A stretch of DNA of 63,877 bases, filler included, from Reticulomyxa filosa (GCA_000512085.1; 14 parts of 14 records of this genome joined end to end with filler, not necessarily neighbours in it), one strand, 5' to 3'. Shown: positions 25,850-27,700, counted from the first letter of the whole stretch. Notes: generated from the letters alone by a model not told the origin. Translations and numbers: made by a program.

Positions 25850-27700
25850 CGAATGTGTTATTTGGGCGATTGTCACAATAACGTAACTTACGATTTAATG
25901 AGGAGTGCATGTGTATTGGGCTTTCATCTCAATGTTTGTGGGCCAGTGAATGCAGGAAATGGAAAGGAACACAATGTCGATGATGAAGTGTTAGAGGAAT
26001 GCAAAGACATTTGCAAGCAATATCACAAGTCAACAGATCTCAACAAATGGCTGACAATCACGGACAAACCAGAAGTTGCTTTGCGTGACAATATTGATGT
26101 CATTTACACTGACTCTTGGATGAGCTACGGCGTTGATCCAAAAGACAAAGAAAAGAGAATGCGAACCTTCATGCCTTATCAAGTGGATACACCCAAATTG
26201 AAAATGGCAAAACCTAACTGTTTCGTATTTTTCTCTCCAAACACAAAACAAATTATATTTTCATTTGCTTTGCAATTTATATTAACTATTGTTAAATATA
26301 TAACGTGTACATCATATTCAATACCATCAAATAGGCATTTTCATGAACTGTCTTCCTGCAATTCGAGGCATGGAACAAGCAGCGGATGTCATCGATGGCC
26401 CTCAAAGTGTTGTATTCGATCAAGCTGAAAATCGATTGCATGGCCAAAAAGCACTGTTATTTTATCTTGTTCACGGACATATGGACGTGAACCAATTGTG
26501 CACAGAACAAGATGATTGTGGATATAAGTCATGCAAAGATACGGGGTCAAACAACAAGTGGCACAAATGTGAAAATACCAAGGACCAATGTGAGAAAAAG
26601 AGAATACTTGTCGCTTTAGGTGGCAATGCTTTGAAAAAGCCAAAGGAAAAAGGAACGAATGAAGAAATGCTTGAAAATGTTCGTGAGTCCTGTCGACAAA
26701 TGGTGAAATTGATCGACCATCATAAATATCAATTGATTGTCACCCATGGCAATGGACCTCAAGTAGGAAGCCTGTTCTTCCAACAACAAGTGTCACAAGA
26801 AGTCACACCTGCCATGCCATTGAATGTTTGTGGTGCCATGAGTCAAGGCCAAATTGGATACATGTTACAACAATGTTTGTACAACGAGTTGTTGAAAGAC
26901 GGACACAATCGAGATGAACAGTTACATGACAAAATTGTTACAATTGTCACTCAAGTGGTTGTCGATCCCTCTGATCCTGCATGGGGAAGTCCTTCCAAAC
27001 CTGTCGGTTTGTTATTACTTCTTTTTTTTTCTCCCTCTCTTTCTTTCCCATTCAACACACTTGTTTGAAGCTTCTGTCTCTTAAATCCACTCGAAAATAA
27101 CAACAACAAAAAAGCTAATATGCAAACAATTGTGTGTACAACACACTCAAAGGCAAATTTATGAGTAAGGATGAAGCATTGGCATTGCAAAAAGAAAAGG
27201 GATATTTGTGATGGAAGACGCTGGTCGAGGATGGCGTGTCGCTGTAGCTTCTCCAAAACCAACATATTGTAGAAAAAAACAGCATTGCCCAACTGTGCGA
27301 TGATGGTTACATTATCATTGCCAGTGGTGGTGGAGGAATCCCCGTGGTACGAGGTAATTTGAACAGCATTGAGGGCCGGGATGCTGTCATTGATAAAGAT
27401 TTGGCAGCTGTGCTGTTGGGAGTTAGCATTAGTGCTGATGTGCTGATGATTGCTACTGACGTTGATGCCGTGTACTTAAACTACACAAAAGGTGCTGAAA
27501 AAAAGAAACTTGAGAAAATGACTGTTGCTGAGGCAAAAGAATATTACAAAGCCGGTCATTTTGCAAAAGGTTCTATGGGCCCGAAAATATTGGCTGCCAT
27601 CGAATTTGTTGAAAAAACTGGCAAGGTTTGCATAATTGGTAGCTTAGACCAAATTGAACAAGCAATCCGTGGAGAAAAGGGTACTGTGATTGTTCCTTAA
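25850..27700 (+). CDS. arcB-arcC: Ornithine carbamoyltransferase-carbamate kinase fusion protein (5'-truncated by contig edge)
   Basis: OTC motifs: [46 protein letters not shown]. In the same exon and frame, CK begins with [29 protein letters not shown] and PSKPVG. The next exon has [31 protein letters not shown] and GTVI. Introns at 26220-26334 and 27007-27152; two small indels near 27206 and 27262. Confidence 0.93.

Follow-up and report, generated by a model that had tools for sequence, protein, structure and literature searches.

Does the genome of Reticulomyxa filosa, a naked freshwater foraminifer, encode ornithine carbamoyltransferase (OTC) and carbamate kinase (CK) in one gene, and if so, is such an enzyme new and in which direction would it work? 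The locus that raises this question lies in a window of 63,877 nucleotides, the whole stretch of DNA analysed here, in which parts of the genome records are joined end to end with filler. Positions 25850-29123 (3274 bases) are identical, at every base (100%), to the R. filosa contig ASPP01001552.1 of assembly GCA_000512085.1. The contig carries a single deposited gene, whose 630-aa product, P0176, is entered as "Carbamate kinase [Reticulomyxa filosa]" and has precomputed Pfam matches to OTCace and AA_kinase. The R. filosa OTC-CK fusion is real, is already present in the databases and is not a new kind of enzyme. It is quite likely that the locus is a nuclear gene of R. filosa, present on the contig with its 3' two-thirds, for a bifunctional protein made up of OTC, a flexible Cys-rich tether and a complete CK.

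The OTC half and the junction

The features of the locus are collected in Table 1. Exon 2 is one open frame in which the last 46 residues of OTC are followed by the linker and then by the first 136 residues of CK. The ORF 26343-27068 and the translation of 26334-27008 are free of stops across the junction, running from ...QAENRLH through the linker to ...THGNGPQVG...SKPVG. In the tblastn alignment the OTC end matches the Cantina QKALLMYLVHG right up to the linker. According to the preliminary description, the C-terminus of OTC passes into the N-terminus of CK within this exon with neither a stop nor an intron between them, and the fusion does not result from faulty gene modelling; the ORF list, the translation and the matches to TIGR00658 and TIGR00746 on either side of the junction bear out both statements. 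The junction has been observed correctly, and the observation is far beyond chance.

Table 1. Features of the OTC-CK locus, in positions of the window
Feature	Coordinates	Strand	Remarks
Exon 1	25850-26219	+	5' end cut by the contig edge; OTC Asp/Orn-binding domain; OTCace and TIGR00658 matches
Intron 1	26220-26334	+	GT..AG, 115 nt, phase 1; G+C 22-24%; homologue alignments break here
Exon 2, OTC C-terminus	26335-26474	+	NCLP at 26346-26357, then QAENRLH; TIGR00658 positions 259-302/304
Exon 2, linker	26475-26597	+	41 residues, in frame, 5 Cys and 3 His; G+C 39-40%
Exon 2, CK N-terminal part	26598-27006	+	TIGR00746 positions 1-128/309, E 1.5e-43
Intron 2	27007-27152	+	GT..AG, 146 nt, phase 1; G+C 33-36%, pyrimidine-rich start
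Exon 3, first segment, frame 2	27153-27207	+	Ends ...EKGY before the shift
Exon 3, out-of-frame segment, frame 1	27205-27267	+	Conserved CK stretch; -1 shift at 27205-27207, +1 shift near 27262-27266
Exon 3, last segment, frame 2	27263-27700	+	CK C-terminal part; TAA stop at 27698-27700
3' flank	27701-29123	.	AT-rich, 19-39% G+C; without a supported gene; spurious P0176 exons from 27762-28430

The gene had been called eukaryotic on account of its two spliceosomal introns, and this holds: both are of the GT..AG type and AT-rich (22-36% G+C vs 38-48% for exons). In tblastn, homologues cease to align exactly where each intron begins and align again where it ends, from 27152 onwards after intron 2. 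An additional intron hidden in the linker was considered and rejected, as the linker is exon-like in its G+C content (39-40%) and in frame, and its ends resemble those of neither real intron. Scans of the piece for Rfam families and tRNAs found none, and a repeat scan gave no meaningful repeats.

Domain searches were run exon by exon, each exon separately. Exon 1 matches the Pfam OTCace model at positions 5-111 of 157 (E 1.8e-18) and TIGR00658 at positions 151-257 of 304, and exon 2 continues the former at positions 114-156 (E 8.9e-16) and, with its residues 1-44, the latter up to position 302 (E 9.6e-15, NCBIfam), so that the two exons together cover the OTC C-domain, PF00185. All C-domain motifs invariant in an alignment of 30 fusion proteins are kept in R. 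filosa. The contig begins at about position 151 of TIGR00658, and the carbamoyl-phosphate-binding N-domain, PF02729, with its STRTR and HPxQ motifs, lies off the contig; according to Pfam, full-length orthologues of the fusion possess it. The best solved match of exon 1 is 3grf (E 1.3e-16), which we take to be the Giardia OTC, and the OTC part of exon 2 was aligned to 4f2g, 4oh7, 3grf and 1a1s.

Two sequence motifs set this OTC apart from the canonical form: the ornithine loop reads DSWMSYG (26111-26131), the M of the canonical DxxxSMG being replaced, and NCLP stands in place of HCLP, the canonical H being replaced. YTDSWMSY and NCLP are indeed common to the R. filosa OTC and the PDB chain 3grf, as had been proposed. 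The further proposal that they denote the catabolic OTC of anaerobic protists does not hold, since among the 120 nearest stand-alone OTCs, which include those of Asgard archaea, NCLP occurs in 119 and DSWMSYG in 103. Because both motifs are present in stand-alone OTCs of Asgard archaea, Euglena and Aureococcus, they are to be read, at the level of sequence, as marks of an OTC clade and not of catabolic direction or of anaerobic protists.

The CK half and its two frameshifts

The arcC model TIGR00746 matches residues 88-223 of exon 2 over its positions 1-128 of 309 with 149 bits, and the end of exon 3 (27263-27697) over positions 168-308 (E 1.6e-49, 168.7 bits); against the arcC equivalog cut-off of 358 bits these are the scores of exon pieces searched singly, positions 129-167 falling in the frameshifted segment. 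AA_kinase (PF00696) is weak on exon 2 (E 1.1e-4, 22.4 bits vs a whole-protein cut-off of 24.9 bits) and clear on the exon 3 piece (E 9.2e-21). The CK part of exon 2 has 1e19, presumably the Pyrococcus CK-like synthetase, as its best solved match (E 3.7e-37). The CK motifs that are invariant or nearly so across the 30 aligned fusions, including ALGGNA, GNGPQVG and GSMxPK, are all found in the R. filosa row.

No single frame is open throughout exon 3 (27153-27700). The coding sequence leaves frame 2 for frame 1 at the T-run 27205-27207, returning near 27262-27266, and frame 2 contains two in-frame stops in between, TGA at 27209-27211 and TAG at 27245-27247. Neither frameshift appears in the preliminary description. 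Of its claim that both steps reside in a single polypeptide, the junction stands firmly; the assembly as it stands does not literally encode such a polypeptide, the CK frame being broken twice.

We regard it as fairly likely, judging from the sequence, that the two frameshifts are assembly errors, and in R. filosa itself the gene is probably undamaged. The shifts, one of -1 and one of +1, lie 60 nt apart and compensate each other exactly, and the first is situated within a homopolymer. The shifted segment still encodes the conserved GRGWRVxVxSPKP block, represented here by GRGWRVVVPSPKP, in which at least 90% of the 30 aligned fusion proteins keep the residues R, V, S, P and P. In a hand alignment the segment is identical to Cantina at 14 of 20 positions, compared with 45% over the exon-3 alignment as a whole. 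No further stops or frameshifts occur in about 530 codons. The assembly error is favoured because the shifts compensate, the site is a homopolymer, the segment is better conserved than the rest and no other damage is seen; moreover, the R. filosa assembly was reportedly built from 454 reads, which are prone to homopolymer indels.

The same observations bear on a rival reading, that of a pseudogene or of a surplus copy in decay within a repeat-rich genome, in which the frameshifts would be real and a full CK domain absent, so that the product would be at most OTC with a truncated N-lobe of CK or, were 27208-27282 spliced out, with an internally deleted CK. The two frame-2 stops speak for this reading, as does the deposited model, which spans them only by dropping 75 nt of conserved CK codons. 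Only one copy, moreover, was found in the database: when the exon-2 ORF product was looked up by exact identity, no second contig was retrieved, and hence no intact copy for comparison. Set against the exact compensation of the shifts, the homopolymer, the conservation of the shifted segment, the lack of any other lesion and the reported properties of 454 reads, a pseudogene seems unlikely, though it deserves to be kept in mind.

The deposited model itself is faulty in two places. It contains a false intron at 27208-27282 (75 nt, with a cryptic GT..AG), which removes conserved CK residues; as a true intron this interval was rejected, since in frame 1 it encodes those residues. The model also passes over the genuine TAA at 27698-27700 and gains about 125 extra residues from spurious 3' exons, translated in three frames out of the AT-rich 3' flank. 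Because of these two errors P0176 is unfit for use in phylogenies unless corrected. The joined row used in our alignment and trees is P0176:1-505, which is short of about 25 CK residues.

Occurrence of the fusion and direction of the reactions

The preliminary description left open whether the architecture had been documented, and novelty has to be denied. A HMMER scan with the exon-2 product, together with further searches and BLAST, yielded about 40 database proteins in which OTC precedes CK, and one in the reverse order; the top matches of the HMMER scan are two-domain proteins with the Pfam order OTCace_N, OTCace, AA_kinase. Their named sources amount to at least nine eukaryotes, among them Mastigamoeba balamuthi (P0151), Mastigella eilhardi (P0155), Pelomyxa schiedti (P0159), Naegleria fowleri (P0274), the two strains Barthelona sp. 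PCE and PAP020 (between them P0168 and P0170), Cantina marsupialis (P0517), Paulinella micropora (P0175) and R. filosa itself, whose protein is already deposited (P0176). The M. balamuthi protein, m51a1_g3115, is even annotated as 'putative carbamate kinase fused with ornithine carbamoyltransferase'. Complete ORFs from transcriptomes are included, and one member lies on an 18-kb contig among typically eukaryotic neighbours. With OTC first, one frame and a short linker directly after the C-terminal helix of OTC, the R. filosa protein belongs to this family, a widespread but little noticed one that reaches at least five supergroups of eukaryotes (Amoebozoa, Discoba, Metamonada, Stramenopiles and Rhizaria). 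In the literature searched, neither phrases for an OTC-CK fusion nor the names Mastigamoeba, Naegleria and Reticulomyxa led to an account of it. A survey of the eukaryotic enzymes of the arginine deiminase (ADI) pathway lists OTC and CK of R. filosa and does not mention that they form a single gene (PMC5052871), and the OTC-CK fusion is likewise missing from a review of carbamoyl-phosphate enzymes published in 2018 (PMC6022934). A paper of 2026 on a reversed arcC-OTC fusion of ciliates calls that fusion rare, with nothing significantly similar in NCBI nr (PMC13198582).

As to the direction in which the fused enzyme works, a sequence by itself cannot separate a catabolic from an anabolic CK. 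From the distribution of the sequences and the published work, the chances of a catabolic, ATP-yielding direction appear evenly balanced, and this direction is somewhat more likely than the citrulline-forming one. Besides the fusion, ADI is present in the anaerobe Mastigamoeba (Novak et al. 2016, PMC5052871), so there the fusion is most simply understood as the lower part of the ADI pathway, which counts against an anabolic role. The same holds for a 2026 study of a saccamminid foraminifer (PMC13561418), in which OTC and arcC are highly expressed; there arcC is read as ATP-yielding, the formation of ATP from carbamoyl phosphate is proposed and a separate CPS is reported. The ADI-pathway framing given to the R. 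filosa fusion is left unproven, as the survey of Novak et al. (2016) detected ADI in SAR at most once, by a questionable match in Gregarina. The low-oxygen sediment in which the fusion had been placed is a speculative setting. An exclusively anaerobic ATP-yielding role is weakened by the presence of the fusion in Naegleria and Paulinella as well, which are aerobic or phototrophic.

In the citrulline-forming direction, CK would act as a carbamoyl-phosphate synthetase using NH3, CO2 and ATP, and OTC would trap the product as citrulline, either for arginine synthesis or for the handling of ammonia. The equilibrium of OTC lies strongly on the citrulline side, which favours such an anabolic role; the occurrence of the fusion in organisms that are not anaerobes, Paulinella and Naegleria, points the same way, as do the members of the OTC clade, which include Asgard OTCs (one of them labelled anabolic), Euglena and Aureococcus, and the best solved CK match, 1e19, if it is the synthetase we take it to be. 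The survey result for SAR, in which no ADI was detected beyond the questionable Gregarina match (Novak et al. 2016, PMC5052871), the CK-OTC channelling of an anabolic kind known from Pyrococcus (PMC6022934) and the anabolic role proposed for the ciliate arcC-OTC fusion (PMC13198582) also count in its favour. Weighed against the ADI of Mastigamoeba and the foraminiferal study, an anabolic role appears unlikely on balance, if well arguable.

That the fusion is an artefact, be it a chimeric assembly, read-through of a contaminating bacterial operon or an unseen intron or stop in the linker, might be suspected from the shortness of the contig (3274 bp), the fragmented assembly and the demonstrably twofold error of the deposited model, but is exceedingly improbable in view of the single ORF spanning the junction, the exon-like composition of the linker, the two canonical introns, the OTC end matching Cantina up to the linker, and independent fusions of this order and junction in nine or more named eukaryotes, some of them seen as complete ORFs derived from transcriptomes.

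History, assembly and relation to known systems

Phylogenies of OTC and CK were built separately, and in both the R. filosa half falls with clades of other fusions. In the OTC tree the R. filosa C-half belongs to the NCLP clade, as the sister of the TARA OTC P0424 with weak support (86); among the other members of the clade are stand-alone OTCs from Preaxostyla, Anaeramoeba, Euglena, Aureococcus and many Asgard archaea. In the CK tree of 107 sequences R. filosa is placed in a clade with 31 fused and 6 stand-alone CKs of the eukaryote type (SH-aLRT 98), on the other side of which are the prokaryote-type CKs, the reversed fusion and one bacterial fusion. A careful CK tree resolves the neighbourhood as (Cantina fused, (R. 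filosa fused, (Ammonia sp. stand-alone, (P0057, TARA P0276 stand-alone)))) (support values 98/94 and 99/96).

The CKs closest to that of R. filosa are thus stand-alone genes, from Ammonia sp. and from a TARA scaffold, and because the nearest relatives stand alone the fusion is not needed for function. On the TARA scaffold the CK and OTC closest to those of R. filosa are adjacent, convergent and separate genes. Arg/Ser-rich N-terminal extensions without acidic residues are present in both TARA proteins, in the Ammonia CK and in the Cantina fusion. These extensions and the separate, adjacent TARA genes hint at an organellar location and at fission of the gene in some foraminifera. Secondary fission in foraminifera is only suggested by the best tree, because an AU test leaves R. 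filosa and Cantina acceptable as an exclusive clade (p 0.32).

The conserved motifs of both domains are present in R. filosa in the 30-sequence alignment, and a mechanism can be proposed on this basis. The two sites would exchange labile carbamoyl phosphate, the product of one and the substrate of the other, and the fusion would fix their 1:1 stoichiometry and their proximity. The benefit would be greatest if CK pulled the unfavourable phosphorolysis of citrulline towards ornithine, CO2, NH3 and ATP; in the reverse direction the fusion would shield freshly made carbamoyl phosphate. OTC forms trimers and CK forms dimers, and for a fusion of the two the simplest way to a closed particle would be a hexamer of D3 symmetry in which three CK dimers link two OTC trimers, comparable to ATCase-type complexes; we infer this arrangement from the symmetry of the partners by analogy. 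In the AlphaFold monomer of the Cantina orthologue both domains fold well (pLDDT 88), with about 65 for the linker and a pTM of 0.59, which fits two tethered domains whose arrangement may be set by oligomerisation; a fixed docking of OTC on CK finds no support in a model with a pTM of only 0.59.

Among the fusions the linker is between 7 and 56 aa long, that of R. filosa being about 32 residues longer than that of Cantina and matching no Pfam family. Cys-rich linkers also occur in several fusions of the Archamoebae type, with up to 10 Cys as compared to 5 in R. filosa. A much bolder picture can be drawn, one of an ancient, unrecognised bifunctional enzyme of eukaryotes forming a closed channelling particle of trimers and dimers, a D3 hexamer or a larger body, with Cys-rich linkers as metal- or redox-sensitive elements tuning the coupling to oxygen status, the gene having secondarily given rise, in some foraminifera, to two separate genes whose products carry organelle-type presequences; taken as a whole, it is quite improbable.

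Among known systems, the closest to the R. filosa protein are Mastigamoeba P0151 and its orthologues in Pelomyxa, Mastigella, Barthelona, Naegleria, Cantina and Paulinella, with which it shares the order OTC_N, OTC_C, linker and CK (OTC_N being taken from the orthologues), the junction after the C-terminal helix of OTC, NCLP, DSWMSY and the CK motifs. Its identity to the other OTC-CK fusions is 44-55% in both halves. It differs from them in its longer (41 aa), Cys/His-rich linker and in the introns of its gene, in the missing 5' end and in a CK part that, as assembled, contains frameshifts. Most fused CKs, moreover, are more distant from the CK of R. filosa than are the stand-alone ones of Ammonia and of environmental eukaryotes.

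With separate arcB and arcC enzymes, such as 3grf and 3kzf, both presumably from Giardia, it has in common the enzyme families, the OTC clade motifs and the presumed chemistry, in which citrulline and Pi would give ornithine and carbamoyl phosphate and the latter would give ATP. In the arcB/arcC pathway, however, the two activities reside in two polypeptides instead of one, and ADI is part of the pathway.

The best CK match, 1e19, leads to a further comparison, the association of the same two enzymes in Pyrococcus furiosus. There, CK and OTC form a physical channelling complex in which labile carbamoyl phosphate is handed over, as far as the work of Massant and Glansdorff (2005) is related in the review that cites it (PMC6022934). 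Unlike the R. filosa fusion, this complex is non-covalent, anabolic, archaeal and thermophilic.

The arcC-OTC fusion of anaerobic APM ciliates (PMC13198582), in the report of which the OTC-CK family is not mentioned, likewise unites CK and OTC in one polypeptide; its order, seen in P0214, is the opposite, and both halves are of a different, bacterial origin. In our trees P0214 falls among the prokaryote-type CKs and far from the OTC clade of R. filosa.

More distant parallels are the bacterial AllH-CK fusions (PF11392 and PF00696, as in Listeria rocourtiae P0202), ATCase-dihydroorotase and CAD, in all of which a carbamoyl-transfer component is joined to the next enzyme of carbamoyl-phosphate metabolism. 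ATCase-type complexes combine trimers and dimers into D3 assemblies. The substrates of AllH-CK and of ATCase/CAD (oxalurate and aspartate) and their partners differ from those of the R. filosa fusion, and the fusion events are not homologous.

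The deposited gene model

The deposited R. filosa product, P0176, rests on a gene model with two errors. Within the carbamate kinase (CK) half, a stretch of conserved coding sequence was removed as an "intron", which serves to bridge two frameshifts, while at the 3' end the true stop codon was passed over, and the C-terminal ~125 residues of P0176 are spurious, being translations of the AT-rich 3' flank in three frames.

Coordinates of the features discussed and cysteine counts of the linkers
Feature	Position	Remark
R. filosa linker	window 26475-26597	5 Cys
P0157 linker		10 Cys
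P0154 linker		6 Cys
P0153 linker		5 Cys
Pelomyxa (P0159) linker		4 Cys
"Intron" of the P0176 model	window 27208-27282	75 nt of CK coding sequence
True stop	window 27698-27700	TAA
Spurious C-terminus of P0176	window 27701-28450	3' flank
Stand-alone CK P0276 and OTC P0424	L004:6001-8508	TARA metagenome scaffold
P0178	L002:8001-9452	ENA contig

Linkers and relatives of the fusion

Cysteine-rich linkers recur in the family of OTC>CK fusions (OTC, ornithine carbamoyltransferase), being present in P0157, P0154, P0153, P0159, and P0162 besides R. filosa. Cysteine-richness aside, their length and sequence are unconserved, and they match no known motif.

The R. filosa CK, described as isolated from other eukaryotes by Novak et al. 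2016 (PMC5052871), is placed firmly by CK trees built with the present sampling, together with Ammonia sp., two environmental eukaryote CKs, and Cantina. The nearest stand-alone relatives of the two halves, the CK P0276 and the OTC P0424, are encoded by separate, neighbouring, convergent genes, and each begins with a stretch that resembles a presequence; the same holds for P0005, the CK of Ammonia sp., which also stands alone. These observations suggest that in some relatives the gene was split and its products are targeted to an organelle. Mastigamoeba balamuthi has a stand-alone OTC (P0396, m51a1_g5915, 404 aa) in addition to its fused gene (P0151). P0396 is the sister of the OTC domain of P0151 (support 99); this points to a duplication of recent date in which the CK part was lost or acquired.

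Other fusions with carbamate kinase

The reversed order, CK>OTC, was found only in P0214 (661 aa), whose CK groups among prokaryote-type CKs and whose OTC lies outside the NCLP clade, the OTC group holding the R. filosa half, on a very long branch; P0214 may be the arcC-OTC fusion that has been described from anaerobic ciliates. In P0178 a carbamoyltransferase C-domain and a prokaryote-type CK form one protein, encoded in a bacterial context beside xanthine-dehydrogenase-like, TetR, and ABC-transporter genes. It appears to be a fusion that arose separately in bacteria, and it probably acts in the breakdown of purines or ureides. In the bacterial proteins P0034, P0189, P0199, and P0202 (e.g., of Listeria rocourtiae), carbamate kinase is joined to the AllH subunit of oxamate carbamoyltransferase (PF11392). 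These AllH-CK proteins are analogous to OTC>CK in fusing carbamoyl transfer with CK, but their substrate differs.
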